DNA from: Mobula hypostoma
Lineage: Eukaryota
Assembly: GCF_963921235.1 (NCBI RefSeq)
Contig: NC_086109.1
Coordinates: 11,718,001-11,782,000, forward strand
Reading direction: 5' to 3'
DNA length: 64,000 nucleotides
The notes beneath the pieces are model-generated. The model did no database searches. It saw only the letters and a program-made list of their open reading frames with translations, and had not been told where the DNA came from. The position numbers and the translations under genes are program-made. Positions 18,880 through 64,000 of the stretch are shown piece by piece. How positions within the stretch are numbered: position 1 is the first letter of the stretch; each line of letters begins with the position of its first letter.

Positions 18880-19071
18880 TTACTTTTTGAATGCAATTGT
18901 AGAATACTCTATCGGCTCTGAAGCTGGAGGCTCGATAACTGATGGCTTGTTCTCCTCCGGGCTGCTGGAAGGGTTCACATTATCGTATGTGGCGGAGTCT
19001 TCCTGAGGGTGGCCAGTAGGCTGAATTGCCACAGTGGCGTAGGTAACTCCTGCTTCCTTCTCTTTGGAGAG
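18880..19071 (-). CDS. Gene A terminal exon 7, ITIM-bearing cytoplasmic tail
   Basis: Acceptor tctcattctctgtctgcag|, phase 0; LSKEKEAGVTYATVAIQPTGHPQEDSATYDNVNPSSSPEENKPSVIEPPASEPIEYSTIAFKK then TAA. Confidence 0.92.
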   Translation of the reverse strand, partial: LSKEKEAGVTYATVAIQPTGHPQEDSATYDNVNPSSSPEENKPSVIEPPASEPIEYSTIAFKK

Positions 19072-26909: not shown

Positions 26910-27010
26910 CTTTATTTTTCTGCTTTCTCACTTTTTTCATAACTAGTACCAGGAGTCCGAGAAACACCATAGTTAGTATTCCAAAGACTAGTCCAAGTAT
27001 TATGAAAAGC
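26910..27010 (-). CDS. Gene A exon 4, transmembrane (101 nt, phase 2 to 1)
   Basis: (W)LFIILGLVFGILTMVFLGLLVLVM-KKVRKQKNK; uncharged TM followed by a basic stop-transfer stretch; donor AAAG|GTAAGT. Confidence 0.9.
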
Positions 27011-27492
27011 CTTGGTTTTTATGAAAAAGAGAGTAAAAAAGAACAGTAAGATAAGGTCAGAATGTATCAATTGAATATGCACCATGAAATATGATGGTAA
27101 TCATATATGCAATATAATTTACCTGATATAATGGCTGTCATTTTCTAACATCAGATTACAATCTAGGACACTGAAGTTAACTTCAGTGCAGCTGAATGTT
27201 GGGAGTGTGCTCAACTGGCAGCCAATAATTTTGCATGTGTTTAACCCTAGCAACCAATGTGGAATTACACCCTCTCACACGCCAAAAGCAATGTGGCATT
27301 GAGTCAGTGATCCATCTACAATGGTTTAATGATAGCTGGAGTTCTGATAAAGAGACATTGATTGCATTCCCGCTCACTTGCTGAAGCCCCAGGGACATAA
27401 TCAATTTCTCTTTATCTATCATAAAGTAACATTGGTTCACTGGTAACAGTGGCATTCCCTAGAACCCCTTTGACACTCGATCCCACTCTTAC

Positions 27493-33740: not shown

Positions 33741-33796
33741 AAATTTATGCAAAGGACACACAAGTCTGGGACTTGCAGGTCAGAATAATATCTTAC

Positions 33797-34132
33797 CTTC
33801 ACGAATTTTCAGTTCTACAGCACTTGAAGGATCCAGAAGATGAGGTTTATCTATTCCACACCAATACCAACCCTCATCACTTTTTCTTAATCTTTCTATT
33901 CGTATTGTAAGTTCTCCTTTTTTGTTGTTAGCTGCAATTGTTATTCTGCCGTCTCCACTTTTCATCTCAGGGCCTTGCGTTTGTACTAAAACAGTACAGG
34001 TCCTGCGGTAGTATCCCTTGCACCAGTACTTCTGATAGCTTCTGAAAAATGGGTTAAACTTGCAGTCGATTTCAACCTCATTTCCCACCGTTCCGGTTTT
34101 CGCACTTGGTCCAGTTATGTCAGCGTATGTCA
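33797..34132 (-). CDS. Gene A exon 2, Ig V-set domain of CD300/pIgR (CMRF35-like) type
   Basis: acttacag|TG ACA..GAA G|GTAAGA, 336 nt, phase 1-1; canonical C..W..DEGWYWC plus the family-specific extra pair in KYWCKGYYRRTC. Confidence 0.95.
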
Positions 34133-34395
34133 CTGTAAGTGTGAAATTATAACATGTTGTAAAGTACAAGAGATAGATGCTTATACTGCTGTGCACAAAA
34201 TAGCTTATGTAAAGAAGTAAGGGATAGCATGGAAAGGGTGGCTGAAGGGCCTATTTATGAGCTTTATGAGTCTTTGACTCCATTTAATTGAAACCCTCAT
34301 GTAATTGCCATATACACGCAGTGGCCACTTTATTAGGTACCTCTGTACCTTATAAAGTGATTACTGAGTGTATGTCAATAAGGCCATAAGATATA

Positions 34396-50620: not shown

Positions 50621-51041
50621 TTGTTCTAAGTCCACGGTAAGTCTGCAGTTGGAGGCATTAAAAACACATTAGTTATGTCAAGCTGTAATCAAAGAAGAAA
50701 GAAAGAGGATTTGTTTCACAGCAAAGTGCTCCCTCATTTTGATCAACACAGATATGGAATCATTCATGGCATAGGCGTAGCTGGAGTGTATTCAGTCCAT
50801 TGCATGCGATTTAAACTTTGGAGAAACTACTGTTTTAATAGAAACAATTTAAATGCCATTGGTACTTCATAATTGGCAAATGCTTACTTCCAAGGTCTAT
50901 GGTCTATTTACAGTGTTGTGTTTTCATTTCAGAAGTATTTATGAAGATGTTTTCAAAGAATAGCTCTTAGATGTTCTTAAGGATAAACCTGTAAGTACGG
51001 AAACAATCAATTAGAAAGAAACCTTACCAGGTTTTCTTTGT

Positions 51042-51138
51042 CTATATTCTCATGGCCACTATACCCCAGAGAAGAAGAATGACAAAGAAGATCCAACGTA
51101 AAATGCTCCATATGAAATGGTATTTGGAATTATTTTTC
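51042..51138 (-). CDS. Gene B transmembrane exon with Arg and immediate stop (exon continues to a donor at 51028)
   Basis: ctctttcctcacag|G AAA..; (R)KNNSKYHFIWSILRWIFFVILLLWGIVAMRI then TAG; the phase 2 acceptor matches the stalk exon; CTG|GTAAGG donor 14 nt after the stop. Confidence 0.88.
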
Positions 51139-51333: not shown

Positions 51334-52532
51334 TCAGTTATTTTATATTATATTTATTTTAACTTTTTTCATGCTCTAGAGCCTTACGGTTAACAAAGGG
51401 GTCCATGGACCCCAGGTTGGGAACCCCTAAGGTAGATGTAAAGGTCATGCAAAGAGTTAAACCATTTCAGTGGAAAATTACAAGTCAAACCCATTGGTTT
51501 GAGTACTGAGTCATACATATACCAGACTATTTAAGGCTGGCAGACTTCCTTCCCTATAGGACTTTGATAAACCAGATGTGTTTTCATGCAAAAAAATCGT
51601 TTTGATATTAGTTTATTTTCTATATCTATTTAAATAATGTAGTTAATTAAATAAGTATACATTTTCTATCTGATTTGCTGGAATTTGAACCCCTGATTTC
51701 CCAGATCAGTGATGCAATGTAATTACTGCCTTGCTTCCAAACCTCTGCTGCAGCCTATGTTGCACAGTGTAATAAACAGAAGGTCTGTGAGGTGAAATTG
51801 ACTCTTTCATGCTTTCTTTGTACAGAGTAACAGATAATGTTACCTTGTGACGTGATGGTGGAGCAGTTAGTGCTGGTACCTCCCATTTCCATGGGCCCAC
51901 ATTCAATCCTGAACTTGGGTGCTTTTTGTGCGGAGTTTCCATGTTGCCTTTCCCCAAATGATCTGGTTTCCTCCCATCACCAAAAGACTTACTGATTGGC
52001 AAACTGAACACTGTAAACTGCCCCTTAGTGTTGGTTAATGTTAAAAAGATTCAAAGGGAGTTGATAGACATTTGTGAGAGAGAATATGTAGCTGGGGTAC
52101 AGGGAAAGAGAGAGGGGACCAGATTGATGAGATTGCCTCCCTAGGAGTCAGCACGGATCTGAAGGGCCAAAAGTGTTGTCATAAGAATACCCTATCCACA
52201 TACATTAAATTAATTTTTAGGGACTGGTAAATTCCCAAAAGGCCATAGATCATTAAAGATAGGAGCAGAATAGGCCATTTGGCCTATCGGGTGTGCTCTG
52301 CCATTTGATCGTGCCCGTTTATTTATTTAGAGATACAGTGCAGACCAGCCCATTCCAGCCCAATAAGCTGAATCCGCCAGCAAACCACCTATTTAACTCG
52401 AGGATAATCACAGAACAACTTACAATGACCAATTAATCTAATAACCGGTACATCTTTGGAATGTGGGAGGAAACTGGAGCACCTGAGGAAACCCACACAG
52501 TCACGGGGAAATTGTACAAACTCCTTACAGCT

Positions 52533-53525
52533 GGTAACAACAGGAATTCTGCAGATGCTGGAAATTCAAGCAACACACATAAAAGTTGCTGGTGAACGCA
52601 GCAGGCCAGGCAACATCTCTAGGAAGAGGTGCAGTTGACGTTTCAGGCCGAGACCCTTCGTCAGGACTAACTGAAGGAAGAGTGAGTAAGGGATTTGAAA
52701 GTGGGAGGGGGAGGGGGAGATCCAAAATGATAGGAGAAGACAGGAGGGGGAGGGATGGAGCCAAGAGCTGGACAGGTGATAGGCAAAAGGGATACGAGAG
52801 GATCATGGGACAGGAGGTCCGGGAAGAAAGACAAGGGGGGGGGGACCCAGAGGATGGGCAAGGGGTATATTCAGAGGGACAGAGGGAGAAAAAGGAGAGT
52901 GAGAGAAAGAAGGTGTGTATAAAAATAAGTAACAGATGTGATACAAGGGGGAGGTGGGGCATTAGCGGAAGTTAGAGAAGTCGATGTTCATGCCATCAGG
53001 TTGGAGGCTACCCAGATGGAACATAAAGTGTTGTTCCTCCAACCTGAGTGTGGCTTCATCTTTACAGTAGAGGAGGCCGTGGATAGACATGTCAGAATGG
53101 GAATGGGATGTGGAATTAAAATGTGTGGCCACTGGGAGATCCTGCTTTCTCTGGCCAGCAGAGCGTAGATGTTCAGCAAAGCGGTCTCCCAGTCTGCATC
53201 GGGTCTCGCCAATATATAAAAGGCCACATCGGGAGCACCAGACGCAGTATATCACCCCAGCGGACTCACAGGTGAAGTGTTGCCTCACCTGGAAGGACTG
53301 TTTGGGGCCCTGAATGGTGGTAAGGGAGGAAGTGTAAGGGCATGGGTAGCACTTGTTCCGCTTACACAGATAAGTGCCAGGAGGGATCCCACCACTAAGC
53401 ACATCTTTCCCTCCCCCGCTCTCTCTGCATTCCGCAGGGATCGCTCCCTACGCAACTCCCTTGTCCATTCGTCCCCCCCCATCCCTCCCCACTGATCTCC
53501 CTCCTGGCACTTATCCGTGTAAGCG
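52533..53525 (-). mobile_element. Penelope-like element 3' part (GIY-YIG plus terminal repeat) with an inverted 5' segment (about 53386-53525)
   Basis: ORF 52962-53402 is GIY-YIG; 53386-53525 is the reverse complement of the sequence that continues colinearly in the 61-62 kb copy. Confidence 0.92.
52633..52668 (-). ncRNA. Minimal hammerhead ribozyme motif, intact core, one stem I mismatch
   Basis: Minus strand agtc-CTGACGA-agggtctcggcct-GAAA-C-GTC-aact. Confidence 0.68.
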
Positions 53526-55119: not shown

Positions 55120-55171
55120 CTGATTTCCTGCGCTGATAAGTTATCTGTGACTGGAGGAAGTAACTGATGAC
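55120..55171 (-). CDS. Gene B stalk exon (52 nt, phase 1 to 2)
   Basis: tttccctcatttttaacag|GT CAT..ATC AG|GTAAAA; (S)HQLLPPVTDNLSAQEI(R); identical length and phases to gene A exon 3. Confidence 0.86.
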
Positions 55172-56934: not shown

Positions 56935-57267
56935 TTTCAAAGATGTCCAGTTTTACAGGAATATGCAGGTCCATCAAAAATCCGGTAATTCCACACCAAT
57001 ACATGTCTTGATCATTCAGAGTTAGCTGGTCCATGGTGACTGTAAACTCCCCGGCTCTTTTATCATCTTTAATGCTTATCCTGCCTTCAGAGATTGTCTT
57101 CTCAGAGCCTTGAGTTTTTACCAGAATGGTACAGGCTGACCTATTCTTGCCTTTGCACCAGTATTTCTGATAGTTGCGGAAAAACATGCGGTAGGTACAG
57201 GTAATCTGGACTGATTCTCCCTCATTTCCATTTACTACTTGTGGTCCTCTTAGAGTAGCATTTGCAA
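56935..57267 (-). CDS. Gene B Ig V-set exon of CD300/pIgR (CMRF35-like) type
   Basis: tgaacag|TT GCA..GAA A|GTAAGG, 333 nt, phase 1-1; xANATLRGPQVVNGNEGESVQITCTYRMFFRNYQKYWCKGKNRSAC..DQDMYWCGITGFLMDLHIPVKLDIFE. Confidence 0.95.
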
Positions 57268-58860
57268 CTGTTCAATGTGAACATATAATGAACATGTTAA
57301 AGCATAAAAATTGCAACAGATTAATAACTCAGTGGCACATGCAAAATTCTGGAGTAACTTATCAGGTCAGGCAGCATCAATGGAGGGGAATAAACAGCCT
57401 ACATTTTGTGCTGATTTCTCTAACATCTGGTAATTACCACCCCACCCTTATTTCCCCCATTTTTCATTCATTGTTCTGGTTACCCATTCATCCCTTCACT
57501 TCTCCTCTCCCACCCTCATTACCTGCCCATCACTTCCTTGTGGTTCCCCACCTCCTCCCCTTTATTCCATGATCCACTGATCTCTTCTTCAGCCCTTTAC
57601 CTTTCCCCTCCTCATCTCCCAGCTTCTCCACCTCCCCCACCTATCCCTTCACATCGTTTCCTCTATCACCTACCAGCTTGTACGCCTCCCACTCCTCCCG
57701 CGATCTTACTCTTGTTTCTGCCCCGTTCCTTTCCAGTCCTGATGAAAGGTCTCAGCCTGAAATGTCAACTGTTTATTTCCCTGCACAGAAGCTGCCTGAC
57801 CTGCTAATTTCCTCCAGCACTTTGTGCGTGTTGCTCAAGATTTCCAGCAACTTCAGAACCTCTTCCGTCTAATAACTCCAAGTGTTCACTTGAGAACTTA
57901 AGATCATTTGAAATTATGGTCCTTGTGTCCTAACTCGCACCAAGCTCCAATTAGCTGACATCTTTGCAATTGCTGATCTTTTCTATTAAACAGAATCTTC
58001 GAAGTACTCATCCTTGCTTTCGTTTTACTGCATTATCTTGCCTTGTTCTCATCTCCAGAATCTCAAGCCCTTTAACAACCCAGATCTCTGCACTCCTCCA
58101 AATACAGCCTCTCGACCCCTCTAATACTTGCAGGCATGCCTTCAACCTTTTGCCCTTCTACTCCTCTCCAACTCGCTCCCCTTTTAAGCTCTCCATAAGA
58201 CCCCCTTGCCCACACCTTGCTCGTTTACCTAACGCCTTATCAGCAGAGGAAAATCAAGCAAAAAAAAGAAGCACTGTAATGATGGAATTCTGAAATATAA
58301 ATGGGAAGTTCTGGAACCACTCTGCTGGTCAGCAGGTGTCAGTGGACAATGAAGCAGTTAACACGTCAGGCTCTACCCCAGTAGGAACACACAAAACACT
58401 GGAGGGACTCAACACCTCAGGCAGTATCTAAGGAGGATAATGGACAGTTGAGATTTCAGGACACAAAATGTTCCTATGGCATTTTGTGTATTGCCCTCTC
58501 TTGTGTCCATGCTGGAGGTGTCTGACAAAAGACCTAGAAGCTAAAACTTTAATGTTCATTCTTTCCACAGATACTACCTGACCAACTGAGCAAAATGGAT
58601 TCCTGCTTTCACTTCTTACATCTCATCCCATAGCTTTGTGTCAGCATCTTGGCTGTTAAGTCTTGTGAGGTGCCTCATGGTGCTTTCTACGTTAAGAGTG
58701 CTATACAAATAAAAAAATCCATTTTAGGACTGGTTATTACCCCTGGAACATCAGGGACTTGAATCAGAGAGGATAACTTCACACATCCCATCACTGAACT
58801 AATTCCACAATCGATGGATTCAGTTTTAAGGATTCTACTGGTCTTGATATTTATTGCTTA

Positions 58861-59811
58861 TTTATTATTATTACAAAAACACTTTTTTCTTAGCTCAAGC
58901 TGGTAAAACCTGAGGTGCAGGCAGAGCTAAGCACACTCATTTCACAATTGTTAGGAACTTTCGGACTATTCTAGTGCTGGTTAGTATTGTGCCTTTCTGA
59001 AGATTTATATAGAAATTGCTGTGTAGCCCTAATTGTGTAATGTTATTGTGTTGTGCATTTGGGATGATAGCAGTTGTAGACATTGCTATCAGGACAATGT
59101 ATACCCTGTTCATGTTCAAAAGTCTTGACTTTCAATTTCCTCTTTTAATTGAACATATTTCTGGTGTTTTTCACTTATTGATTTCTGTAGGTAATATGTG
59201 TTTGGAATGGCTAATTCTATTAAGCAGGTTGTTCTTTCTTGTTTATCCTGTATTGTTATGGATTGTCCTATCTGTAATAATGGATCAGTTGTAATATAAT
59301 TTGTGGTATTCTGACCCGAAAGCTCGATCATGATTGTATTTATCGTAAGGTATGATTTTTTTGTGTTTGTACTTTAAAGCAAGATTTTGATGAATGATAT
59401 TTGCTACTTGATTGTGCCTGTGTAAGTAATCAGATTGAATTAAACTGCTACAGGATCCTGTAACGTGTTGGATTGTTTATTGTTTTTCTCGTCATTTTCT
59501 ACATTTATCATCTTGAATTTGTTAGTCTTTTATCATGTAATTTTGATTTTTTTTTGAGTGTGTTAACCACCTGGTCCTATATTACCACAAGGAATCCTTT
59601 TGTTTCGGGGAAGAGGTCCCCAATTCTGAGCCAGGCGTTCAACGCTTCCTTGTCGACATCTGATCTGCAAGGATCATGGGAATGTCTTCCATGAAGGGTC
59701 ATGCTCCACCATTGGTTAACTTTTTCTTCAACAATGATAATTTGTTCATTTTCCTGGGTTATGGTCTCATTTAAGTTTAGTGGTGTGTACTTCTTATCAG
59801 AATTGTATATG
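58861..59811 (-). mobile_element. R4/Dong-like non-LTR retrotransposon 3' part (restriction-like endonuclease)
   Basis: TLHGRH..VDKEALNAWLRIGDLFPETKGFLV; QDKQERTTCLIELAIPNT..EKHQKY (RLE); ..TILTSTRIVRKFL; (aat)n tail near 58861. Confidence 0.82.
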
Positions 59812-62800
59812 TCGGTATTTCAGTGGAGTAAAGGAAATTATAGTGGCATGAGAGAGGAACTCGTGAAAGTTGACTGGAAAGGGACACTGGCGGGAAGGAC
59901 AGCAGAGCAGCAGTGACTGGAGTTTATACGAGAAGTGAGGAAGGTGCAAGATAGGTATATTGCAAAAAAGAAGAAATTTTTGAATGGAAAAAGGATGCAA
60001 CCGTGGTTGACAAGAGAAGTCAAAGCAAAAGTTAAAGCAAAGGAGAGGGCATACAAGGAAGCAAAAATTAGTGGGAAGACAGAGGACTGGGAAGTTTTTA
60101 AAAGCTTACAAAAGGAAACTAAGAAGCTCGTGAAGAGGGAAAAGATTATGAAAGGAAGCTAGCAAATAATATCAGAGGATACTAAAAGCTTTTTCAAGTA
60201 TATAAAGAGTAAAAGACAGGTGAGAGTAGATATAGGACCGATAGAAAATGATGCTGGAGAAATTGTAATGGGAGATGAGGAGATGGTAGAGGAACTGAAC
60301 GAGTATTTTGCATCAGTCTTCAGTGAGGAAGACATCAGCAGTATACCGGACACTCAAGGGTGGCAGGGAAGAGAAGTGTGCGCAGTCACAATTACGATAG
60401 AGAAAGTACTCAGGAAACTGAATAGTCTAAGGGTTGATAAATCTCCCGGACCAGATAGAATGCACCCTTGTGTTCTGAAGAAAGTAGCTGTGGAGATTGC
60501 GGAGGCATCAGCGATGATCTTTCAAAAGTCGATAGATTCTGGTATGGTTCCGGAAGACTGGAAGATTGCAAATGTCACTCCGCTATTTAAGAATGGGACA
60601 AGGAAGCAAAAAGGAAATTATAGACCTGTTAGCTTGACATCGGTGGTTGGGAAGTTGTTGGAGTCGATTGTCAAGGATGAGGTTACGGAGTACCTGGAGG
60701 CATATGACAAGATAGGCAGAACTCAGCATGGTTTCCTTAAAGGAAAATCCTGCCTGACAAACCTATTACAATTTTTTGAGGAAATCACAAGTAGGCTAGA
60801 CAAGGGAGATGTTGTGGATGTTGTATATTTGGATTTTCAGAAGGCCTTTGACAAGGTGCCACATATGAGGCTGCTTTACAAGATAAGAGCCCATGAAATT
60901 ACGGAAAAGTTACATACGTGGATAGGGTGTTGGCTGATTGGCAGGAAGCAGTGAGTGGGAATAAAGGTATCCTATTCTATTTGGCTGCCGGTTACCAGTG
61001 GTGTTCCACAGGGGTCCGTGTTGGGGCCACTTCTTTTTACGTTGTATTCAACGATTTGGATTATGGAATAAACAACAGGAATTCTGCAGATGCTGGAAAT
61101 TCAAGCAACACACATCAACGTTGCTGGTGAACGCAGCAGGCCAGGCAGCATCTCTAGGAAGAGGTGCAGTCGACGTTTCAGGCCAAGACCCTTTGTCAGG
61201 ACTAACTGAAGGAAGAGTGAGTAAGGGATTTGAAAGTTGGAGGGGGAGGGGGAGATCCAAAATGATAGGAGAAGACAGGAGGGGGAAGGATGGAGCCAAA
61301 AGCTGGACAGGTGATTGGCAAAAGGGATACGAGAGGATCATGGGACAGGAGGTCTGGGAAGAAAGACAAGGGGGGGGGGGATCCCAGAGGATGGGCAAGG
61401 GGTATATTCAGAGGGACAGAGGGAGAAAAAGGAGAGTGAGCGAAAGAATGTGTGTATAAATATAAGTAACAGATGGGGTACGAGGGGGAGGTGGGGCATT
61501 AGAGGAAGTTAGAGAAGTCGATGTTCATGCCATCAGGTTGGAGGCTACCCAGATGGAATATAAGGTGTTGTTCCTCCAACCTGAGTGTGGCTTCATCTTT
61601 ACAGTAGAGGAGGCCGTGGATAGACATGTCAGAATGGGAATGGGATGTGGAATTAAAATGTGTGGCCACTGGGAGATCCTGCTTTCTCTGGCGGACAGAG
61701 CATAGATGTTCAGCAAAGCGGTCTCCCAGTCTGCGTCGGGTCTCGCCAATATATAAAAGGCCACATCGGGAGCATCGGACGCAGTATATCACCCCAGCCG
61801 ACTCACAGGTGAGGTGTCGCCTCACCTGGAAGGACTGTTTGGGGCCCTGAATGGTGGTGAGGGAGGAAGTGTAAGGGCATGGGTAGCACTTGTTCCGCTT
61901 ACACGGATAAGTGCCAGGAGGGAGATCAGTGGGGAGGGATGGGGGGGACGAATGGACAAGGGAGTCGCGTAGGGAGCGATCCCTGTGGAAAGCAGAGGGG
62001 GGGGGGAGGGAAAGGTGTGCTTAGTGGTGGGATCCCGTTGGAGGTGGCGGAAGTTACGGAGAATAATATGTTGGACCCGGAGGCTGGTGGGGTGGTAGGT
62101 GAGGACCAGGGGAACCCTATTCCTAGTGGGGTGGCGGGAGGATGGAGTGAGAGCAGATGTACGTGAAATGGGAGAGATGCGTTTAAGAGCAGAGTTGATA
62201 GTGGAGGAAGGGAAGCCCCTTTCTTTAAAAAAGGAGGACATCTCCCTCATCCTAGAATGAAAAGCCTCATCCTGAGAGCAGATGCGCGGAGACGGAGGAA
62301 TTGCGAGAAGGGGATGGCGTTTTTGCAAGAGACAGGGTGAGAAGAGGAATAGTCCAGATAGCTGTGAGAGTCAGTAGGCTTATAGTAGACATCAGTGGAT
62401 AAGCTGTCTCCAGAGACAGAGACAGAAAGATCTAGAAAGGGGAGGGAGGTGTCGGAAATGGACCAGGTAAACTTGAGGGCAGGGTGAAAGTTGGAGGCAA
62501 AGTTAATAAAGTCAACGAGCTCTGCATGCGTGCAGGAAGCAGCGCCAATGCAGTCGTCGATGTAGCGACGGAAAAGTGGGGGACAGATACCAGAATAGGC
62601 ACGGAACATAGATTGTTCCACAAAGCCAACGAAAAGGCAGGCATAGCTAGGACCCATACGGGTGCCCATAGCTACACCTTTAGTTTGGAGGAAGTGGGAG
62701 GATTATGGAATAGATGGCTTTGTGGCTAAGTTTGCTGATGATACGAAGATAGGTGGAGGGGCCGGTAGTGCTGAGGAAACAGAGTCTGCAGAGAGACTTG

Positions 62801-63667
62801 GATAGATTGGAAGAATGGGCAAAGAAGTGGCAAATGAAATACAATGTTGGAAAGTATATGGTTATGCACTTTGACAGAAGAAATAAACGGGCAGACTATT
62901 ATTTAAATGGGGAGAGAATTCAAAGTTCTGAGATGCAACGGGACTTGGGAGTCCTCGTGCAGGATACCCTTAAGGTTAACCTCCAGGTTGAGTCGGTGGT
63001 GAAGAAGGCGAATGCAATGTTGGCATTCATTTCTAGAGGAATAGAGTATAGGAGCAGGGATGTGATGTTGAGGCTCTATAAGGAGCTGGTGAGACCTCAC
63101 TTGGAGTACTGTGGGCAGATTTGGTCTCCTTATTTAAGAAAGGATGTGCTGACGTTGGAAAGGGTACAGAGAAGATTCACTAGAATGCTTCTGGGAATGA
63201 GAGGGTTAACATATGAGGAACATTTGTCCGCTCTTGGACTGTATTCCTTGGACTTTAGAAGAATGAGGGGGGACCTCATAGAAACATTTCGAATGTTGAA
63301 AGGCATGGACAGAGTGGATGTGGCAAAGTTGTTTCCCATGATGGGGGAGTCTAGTACGAGAGGGCATGACTTGAGGATTGAAGGGCGCCCATTCAGAACA
63401 GAGATGTGAAGAAATTTTTTTAGCCAGAGGGTGGGGAATCTATGGAATTTGTTGCCACGGGCAGCAGTGGAGGCCAAGTCACTGGGTGTACTTAAGGCAG
63501 AGATTGACAGGTATCTGAGTAGCCAGGGCATCAAAGGTTATGGTGAGAAGACGGGGGAGTGGGACTAAATGGGAGAATGGATCAGCTCATGATAAAATGG
63601 CGGAGCAGACTCAATGGGCCGAATGGCCAACTTCTGCTCCTTTGTCTTATGGTCTTATGGTCTTATG
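59812..63667 (+). mobile_element. Young CR1 LINE (5'-truncated ORF2), split by a Penelope insertion at 61071-62699
   Basis: Long ORFs 60220-60954 (RT) and 62753-63409; GVPQGSVLG and FADD on either side of the insertion; (tcttatgg)n tail 63645-63667. Confidence 0.93.
61071..62699 (-). mobile_element. Penelope-like element (RT C-terminal half, GIY-YIG, terminal repeat) with a 13-bp target-site duplication
   Basis: ORF 62247-62669 MGTRMGPSYA..RYIDD; ORF 61499-61825 GIY-YIG; GGATTATGGAATA at 61058-61070 and 62700-62712. Confidence 0.95.
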
Positions 63668-63968
63668 TTCACATGGAGTGCTGAGTCCTGTTTTCACTGA
63701 TGACAATATATTCTTAGAAGTTTTATGTGACTGTTGTGTAGATTTTTAATATCTGTTATTCCTCTTCCTCCTTCTGTCCAAGGTCGTGTTAATCTAAGTG
63801 CATTAGCATGTACATAACGTTTTCTGAAATCTGTCATTTTTTTCTTCTTATTTTTCTTTGTAAATTTTCTAGGTCTGTTTCAGACCAAGATATCATGTCG
63901 AAAGGATACATTAATATAGATGTAGCAAAGGTGTTTATTGTCTTTGTTATGTTTTTATTGCTGAGCTC
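63668..63968 (-). mobile_element. Upstream part of the same R4/Dong-like element
   Basis: ELSNKNITKTINTFA..WSETDLENLQRKIR..EGGRGITDI..KQDSALHV continues in frame into NIYNSDKKYTPL at 59811. Confidence 0.82.
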
Positions 63969-64000
63969 TACTTAAGGTGGTAAAACCTGAGATACAGGAA

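Follow-up and report, generated by a model that had tools for sequence, protein, structure and literature searches.

A tail-less CD300/pIgR-like receptor with a single membrane arginine in the devil ray Mobula hypostoma, and its predicted coupling to an FcR-gamma/zeta-family adaptor

Ig receptors that come as activating and inhibitory pairs are central to innate immunity. In cartilaginous fishes, the skate's MDIRs (modular domain immune-type receptors) were reportedly described by Cannon et al. in 2006, and the abstract of that work is said to give MDIR1 a positively charged membrane residue. The pairing of such residues with signalling adaptors has been summarised in a 2026 review (PMC13107469): when the Arg lies in the upper half of the membrane segment, as in CD89, NKp30, NKp46 and TCR-alpha, the receptor joins a gamma/zeta dimer by means of an Arg-Asp-Asp contact, whereas all known partners of DAP12 have a centrally located Lys. 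According to the same review, the Arg of CD89 can be moved one helical turn lower with assembly kept, a polar Gln-Asn pair one turn above it may matter, and exchanging Lys and Arg compromises assembly of the TCR-CD3 complex. The macaque KIRs follow the same division, an Arg at position 4 going with FcR-gamma and a Lys at position 9 with DAP12 (PMC8102735). The catfish receptor LITR 2.6b breaks it: although its membrane residue is a Lys, its partners are FcR-gamma, FcR-gamma-L and CD3-zeta-L rather than DAP12, and its adaptor binding is kept when the Lys is neutralised (PMC4810170). The adaptors of the CD300 family are DAP12, DAP10 and FcR-gamma, the last being associated with mouse CD300h and CD300f (PMC7247439). 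As for the gamma chain itself, a 2014 survey found none in sharks or lamprey and put its origin at the bony fishes (PMC4016189).

Here, a window of 64,000 nucleotides of Mobula hypostoma (contig NC_086109.1, positions 11,718,001 to 11,782,000; coordinates below count from its first letter) was analysed for a gene of this general kind, gene B, which lies on the minus strand. Its last coding exon (51042..51138) was delimited by sequence and splice-site reading and matches exactly the C-terminus of the annotated protein XP_062922510.1 (P0001). The splice acceptor reads cctcacag followed by G, the first exon base being 51138, and the exon then reads (R)KNNSKY in the juxtamembrane region, HFIWSILRWIFFVILLLWGIVAM in the membrane, RI as the tail, and TAG at 51044-51042. 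The interval that the first-pass annotation had singled out thus runs exactly from the first exon base through the final base of the stop codon. Hydropathy scans place a membrane segment of 23 residues (H...M) at 51051..51119, and its sole charged residue is R156 of the 173-residue protein, encoded by CGT at 51096..51098. The cytoplasmic tail is R-I and then the stop, which is short and without signalling motifs. The single arginine and the virtual lack of a tail, both of which had been remarked on in the first-pass annotation, are therefore borne out.

The sequence beyond the stop has two further features. A donor-like gtaagg occurs 14 nt past it (51022..51041), and may mark where the membrane exon formerly ended or serve for splicing within the 3'UTR. 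A second Narcine bancroftii model, isoform X1 (P0263, 197 aa), continues for 26 residues past the ...V-K-M with which the membrane exon ends, and these residues lack a tyrosine motif. Such read-through points to alternative 3' processing at the same donor-like site as the one lying past the stop in Mobula. The first ATTAAA is found 205 nt 3' of the stop (50834..50839) and is a candidate polyadenylation signal on its motif.

Upstream of the membrane exon are a stalk exon of 52 nt with AG and GT flanks (55120..55171), which encodes (S)HQLLPPVTDNLSAQEI(R) and corresponds to residues 125-142 of P0001, and a V-set Ig exon of 333 nt (56935..57267; Pfam V-set, E = 3.3e-18), which again matches P0001 exactly. 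The V exon contains the string C..YWCKGKNRSAC..YWCG, that is, the canonical Cys pair together with the extra Cys pair and the Y-W-C-G motif that mark domains of the CD300/pIgR/MDIR type. Together the three exons give residues 15-173 of XP_062922510.1 with zero mismatches, in an unbroken frame and with canonical splice sites of matching phase. The gene is therefore already annotated, under the automatic NCBI name 'CMRF35-like molecule 3' (Mobula hypostoma, 173 aa). It spans 14,266 bp on a 98.2-Mb chromosome (assembly GCA_963921235.1) and its first intron has retroelement remains, which is why the leader exon lies outside the window. These remains (57300-64000) include two plus-strand ORFs that are reverse-transcriptase-like (60220-60954 and 62753-63409); near-duplicate ORFs are also seen at about 52500-53500 and 61000-62300.

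The product is a small type I membrane receptor, with one CD300/pIgR-like V domain, a short stalk, a helix bearing one Arg, and a two-residue tail. It has the single basic membrane residue and the short motif-free tail by which adaptor-dependent activating receptors are recognised, and it is a real, intact receptor of the MDIR/CD300/pIgR kind, apparently of that activating type. It is worth adding that the length of the stalk exon is not a multiple of three, so that skipping it would shift the frame of the membrane exon, which would then stop after 26 residues and encode no membrane segment. A stalk-skipped product of this sort is modelled by NCBI for the basking shark (P0005, isoform X2, 154 aa), and skipping is a possible route to a soluble form of the gene B product.

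Downstream of gene B on the same strand is an inhibitory-type relative, gene A (18880-19071, 26953-27012 and 33783-34250). Its V exon is CD300-like, its membrane exon is uncharged and leads into K-K-V-R-K, and its tail exon contains V-T-Y-A-T-V, A-T-Y-D-N-V and I-E-Y-S-T-I. Together the two genes resemble an inhibitory/activating pair. An origin of gene B as a recent point mutant of gene A was rejected, the two membrane exons being unrelated in sequence.

The closest named relatives of gene B are found in other cartilaginous fishes. Over the V exon, identity to gene B is 86% for a Hemitrygon akajei 'CMRF35-like molecule 5', 57% for a modular domain immune-type receptor of the skate Rostroraja eglanteria (ABC86795.1 / A0S0E7), 53% for a Mustelus asterias model and 50% for a Cetorhinus maximus model; a Narcine model is a further relative. 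Seven species, the skate among them, have one and the same architecture. In the Mustelus, Rostroraja and Narcine proteins, identity is 60-68% over the 25 residues of the membrane module and 53-60% over the V domain. Between Mobula hypostoma and Mobula birostris the gene B protein differs at six positions, all in the ectodomain and none in residues 139-173. The V domains of mammalian CD300/CLM proteins are 40-45% identical to that of gene B. Among solved structures, the relatives are domains of pIgR, CLM-1/CD300LF, CD300A, CLM-6 and NKp44; the best overall match is pIgR (5e-49, summed over four pIgR domains), and the best single-domain matches are CLM-1/CD300LF (8e-25) and CD300A (8e-17).

The skate protein (P0003) matches gene B with E = 1.9e-36 and 57% identity over 100% of the V exon, and has the same membrane module. 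Its neighbours in the database, ABC86796, ABC86797 and ABC86799, are named MDIR2, MDIR3 and MDIR4 in a published paper, and ABC86795 is therefore MDIR1 by the series. Like gene B, it has one V domain, a short stalk, an Arg within W-N-I-M-R-W-I-F and a two-residue tail; unlike gene B, it has a stalk nine residues shorter. ABC86795.1 would then be the MDIR1 reportedly described by Cannon et al. 2006 (Immunogenetics). Gene B is thus the devil-ray counterpart of a skate MDIR with a charged membrane residue. It is a new member of a family described in 2006, and an activating form within the MDIR family is not in itself new.

To place the arginine within the membrane, the apolar residues above and below the charged residue were counted in gene B, its relatives and several reference proteins, the TCR-alpha sequence being checked against the PDB. 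In gene B there are six apolar residues above the Arg and 15 below (6/15). The Hemitrygon, skate and Narcine relatives have 2/15 and Latimeria has 2/18, with only two apolar residues above the Arg because position -3 is Asn, Arg or Asp. The Asp of FcR-gamma is at 5/15 in primate, bichir and catshark, and the upper Arg of TCR-alpha, which binds zeta-zeta, is at 6/15. The central Lys of TCR-alpha is at 11/10, the Asp of DAP12 (PDB 2L34) at 9/15, and the Lys of the mammalian CD300 Lys-type anchors at 7/14. Expressed as relative depth, the Arg is at 0.32 in Mobula, at 0.14-0.17 in four relatives, and at 0.44 in Mustelus, where the apolar run on the N-side is longer. The family's Arg sits at the level of the FcR-gamma/zeta Asp.

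These counts bear on what the first-pass annotation had proposed from the position of the Arg. Its placing of the residue near the outer face holds for the family, with two apolar residues above the Arg in most relatives and the TCR-alpha-like 6/15 spacing in gene B, and is weaker for Mobula, in which the Arg is one residue shallower than the CD300 Lys. The rule that it used, of an outer Arg for FcR-gamma or zeta and a central Lys for DAP12, is the accepted one for mammals (PMC13107469, PMC8102735), subject to the catfish exception above, and the CD300 Lys that it called central is in fact at 7/14. Since the Mobula Arg is shallower than this Lys by a single residue, the two classes are not told apart by depth alone. 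Residue type does separate the Arg and Lys classes when taken together with the short apolar stretch above the Arg in the relatives. Gene B has an Arg and not a Lys in the top half of its membrane segment, which is what characterises the zeta/gamma class (PMC13107469). The DAP12 class is characterised by a centrally located Lys (PMC13107469), which goes with D-x-x-x-T, and gene B has an Arg in the outer third, a difference that lowers, without removing, the likelihood that gene B uses DAP12. As regards mammalian CD300, the real contrast with gene B is that of Arg against Lys, together with a different membrane module, the difference in depth being small. The further statement that adaptor usage here is distinct from that of mammalian CD300 went too far, given the association of mouse CD300h and CD300f with FcR-gamma (PMC7247439).

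The arginine is part of a recognisable membrane module. It is kept in Mobula birostris, the stingray Hemitrygon, the electric ray Narcine, the skate Rostroraja and the shark Mustelus, and in the ray, skate and shark relatives it reads Y-x-x-W-x-x-[LM]-R-W-x-F-[LF]; behind this come 14-15 apolar residues and then a basic residue, at which the protein ends. Its wider spread was examined with a HMMER search of 1.84 billion representatives, from which the best 150 matches, added to the earlier matches, gave 173 family proteins. The pattern W-x-x-x-R-W is found at 17 sites in 16 of these, in every case opening a membrane-like stretch, as compared with 1.7 sites expected by chance anywhere. The carriers with a looked-up source name include multi-domain 'pIgR-like' models of Hemitrygon, Leucoraja, Narcine and Mobula, and also Latimeria and Acipenser. 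The mammalian and bird matches among the 173 proteins have other modules, mostly F-L-K-[VL]-P with a Lys, and W-x-x-x-R-W was seen in none of them.

Every member that has the module has Trp at -4, although the invariance of W-4, R and W+1 is partly by construction, the pattern having been used to pick some of the rows. Position -3 is polar or charged (N, S, R, D or E) in most relatives; the skate and the stingray have an Asn there, so that their N-x-x-R recalls the QNLIR of CD89. A hydrophobic run of 14-18 residues follows the Arg in the family. The conserved positions do not form a significantly distinct helix face, the observed moment being reached in 3995 of 10000 shuffles. The 'pIgR-like' models with the module have from one to multiple domains (P0231 from Latimeria, P0182 from Acipenser, and P0137, P0225, P0238, P0218, P0201 and P0220). 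The sturgeon model P0182 bears it twice, and P0238 and P0218 bear it in mid-protein; these three may be neighbouring genes fused by annotation.

Coupling to FcR-gamma presupposes that the chain exists in cartilaginous fishes. A search with a 59-residue segment of human FcR-gamma (100% identical to the database entry) returned no fish beyond a bichir. A second search was made with a profile of distant gamma chains, and 120 of its 775 matches were listed. Among these is a protein of the catshark Scyliorhinus torazame (XP_072354383.1, P0324; 'high affinity immunoglobulin epsilon receptor subunit gamma isoform X2', 93 aa, 117 bits). It has one ITAM and the near-invariant membrane segment V-C-Y-V-L-D-A-I-L-F..., and among solved structures it is matched best by FcR-gamma chains (2e-23), with CD3-zeta behind them (5e-12). 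No Mobula chain was obtained from the 120 matches listed. By these sequence measures, at least one elasmobranch has a true FcR-gamma chain, which contradicts the absence from sharks reported in 2014 and argues against an origin of the gamma chain in the bony fishes. For DAP12 in cartilaginous fishes, a literature search gave nothing useful.

The occurrence of the module in cartilaginous fishes, the coelacanth and the sturgeon means that it is older than the split between cartilaginous and bony fishes, and that it is common to receptors differing in their number of Ig domains. We raise, tentatively and as something short of likely, the possibility that W-x-x-L-R-W-[IV]-[LF]-F is an ancient FcR-gamma/zeta docking module. 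It would have predated that split, would have served single- and multi-domain CD300/pIgR-like receptors in sharks, rays, coelacanth and sturgeon, and would have been replaced in tetrapods by modules of the Lys type (CD300) and of the N-L-I-R type (leukocyte receptor complex), with FcR-gamma-coupled innate receptors already present in the first jawed vertebrates. Such a history, if true, would go against the published placing of the gamma chain's origin at the bony fishes. How old and widespread the module is, and the shark FcR-gamma, may outweigh in worth the adaptor finding for gene B itself.

For gene B, the explanation that we prefer is that its partner is a dimer of the FcR-gamma/CD3-zeta family, be it FcR-gamma itself, zeta or a ray-specific relative, and we would give this about an even chance of being correct. 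What the sequences show is how the gene is built, that its Arg is conserved, that the membrane geometry matches and that an elasmobranch FcR-gamma exists; by inference, gene B without a tail would be unable to signal alone, and the buried R156 would be expected to keep the unassembled chain from the surface. R156 would engage the Asp pair of a disulfide-linked signalling dimer in an Arg-Asp-Asp contact, as TCR-alpha does with zeta-zeta and CD89 with gamma-gamma, and the ITAMs of the dimer would recruit Syk-family kinases upon ligand binding. The first-pass annotation had predicted FcR-gamma coupling, and that prediction gains from the choice of Arg over Lys, from a 2-6/15 geometry close to the 5/15 of the FcR-gamma Asp, and from the catshark chain; it loses from the 7/14 position of the CD300 Lys and from the fish exceptions. 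A predicted complex of gene B residues 126-173 with two copies of catshark FcR-gamma residues 19-62 scored 0.16, below the mark of 0.34, and counts neither way. Overall, the adaptor assignment appears a reasonable and testable prediction rather than a discovery, its direction being strengthened by the family comparison. If the Arg module does dock FcR-gamma/zeta, the pairing would be at least as old as the jawed vertebrates.

The main competitor is that the Arg pairs with a dimer of DAP12 or DAP10, in the manner of mammalian CD300b/CD300e and of zebrafish Nitr9, which would leave gene B an activating receptor working through another adaptor family. The geometry lends this some credit, since the Mobula Arg has six apolar residues above it against seven for the mammalian CD300 Lys, and the DAP12 Asp also has 15 residues below it. 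Some known partners of DAP12 or DAP10 (Ly49D/H, Siglec-14 and NKG2D) have an Arg. The NKG2D Arg pairs with DAP10 (PMC13107469), mouse CD300b associates with DAP12 (its pinniped counterpart is among the Lys-type anchors counted above), and in fish, Nitr9, whose membrane segment likewise has a charged residue, signals via Dap12. Against this, the DAP12 partners known to the review all have a central Lys, a Lys/Arg swap is damaging in the TCR-CD3 complex (PMC13107469), and most relatives of gene B have two apolar residues before the Arg where DAP12 has nine before its Asp. We consider DAP12 or DAP10 coupling rather unlikely.

It is also conceivable, and we think quite unlikely, that gene B works without an ITAM adaptor, whether as a tail-less decoy or ligand sink, as the partner of some other receptor chain whose membrane segment has an acidic residue, or mainly as the source of a soluble form through skipping of the stalk exon. 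The survival of LITR 2.6b binding after neutralisation of its Lys indicates that charge pairing is not universal (PMC4810170), family members with Asp or Glu in the membrane segment are among the matches, and the skipped product that lacks a membrane segment is modelled for the basking shark. However, adaptor-dependent receptors are typically marked by just such a combination of one buried Arg and a two-residue tail, and unless there is a partner in the membrane it is difficult to see why this Arg and the Trp residues beside it should be retained from shark to coelacanth and sturgeon. Last, the exon might not be used as annotated, gene B being a pseudogene or the exon belonging to another transcript. 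The leader exon is outside the window, and the sequencing runs listed for the stretch are small-share runs, none of them recorded as RNA; expression and splicing of gene B rest on the NCBI model, the canonical splice sites and the architecture common to seven species. That architecture, which includes the skate ABC86795.1, the intact frame across three exons with its splice sites, and a membrane module identical in two Mobula species set against six ectodomain substitutions all make disuse of the exon very improbable.

Among known systems other than the skate MDIR, gene B can be set beside TCR-alpha (PDB 6JXR, 8TW4) for its membrane geometry. The spacing is identical, with six apolar residues, Arg, 15 residues and Arg, and then a very short tail. 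TCR-alpha differs in having a second basic residue, the central Lys for CD3 delta-epsilon, and in belonging to an eight-chain complex, and is kin to gene B only via the Ig fold. CD89, KIR2DL4, macaque KIR3DS and NKp46 likewise resemble the gene B family: their Arg is close to the upper end of the membrane segment, with a polar residue one turn higher (N-x-x-R), and their tail is short. Their ectodomains, however, are of C2-type Ig domains, their module is N-L-I-R-M, and it has no detectable homology to that of gene B, so that the likeness to the leukocyte-receptor-complex module may be convergent. The mammalian CD300 proteins (CD300LB/CLM-7, CD300LD/CLM-5 and CD300H) resemble gene B in their CD300-type V domain and in having one basic residue in the outer third of the membrane segment, and the activating members use Asp-bearing adaptors. 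Their membrane module is unrelated, being F-L-K-[VL]-P with the Lys at 7/14 as opposed to W-x-x-L-R-W with the Arg at 2-6/15 in gene B and its relatives, and their tail is longer than that of gene B; the likeness seen is one of V-domain similarity. True pIgR, in turn, has an uncharged membrane segment and a long sorting tail, whereas gene B has one domain and no tail, and it is the 'pIgR-like' models of ray, skate, coelacanth and sturgeon that have the same W-x-x-x-R-W membrane module as gene B.
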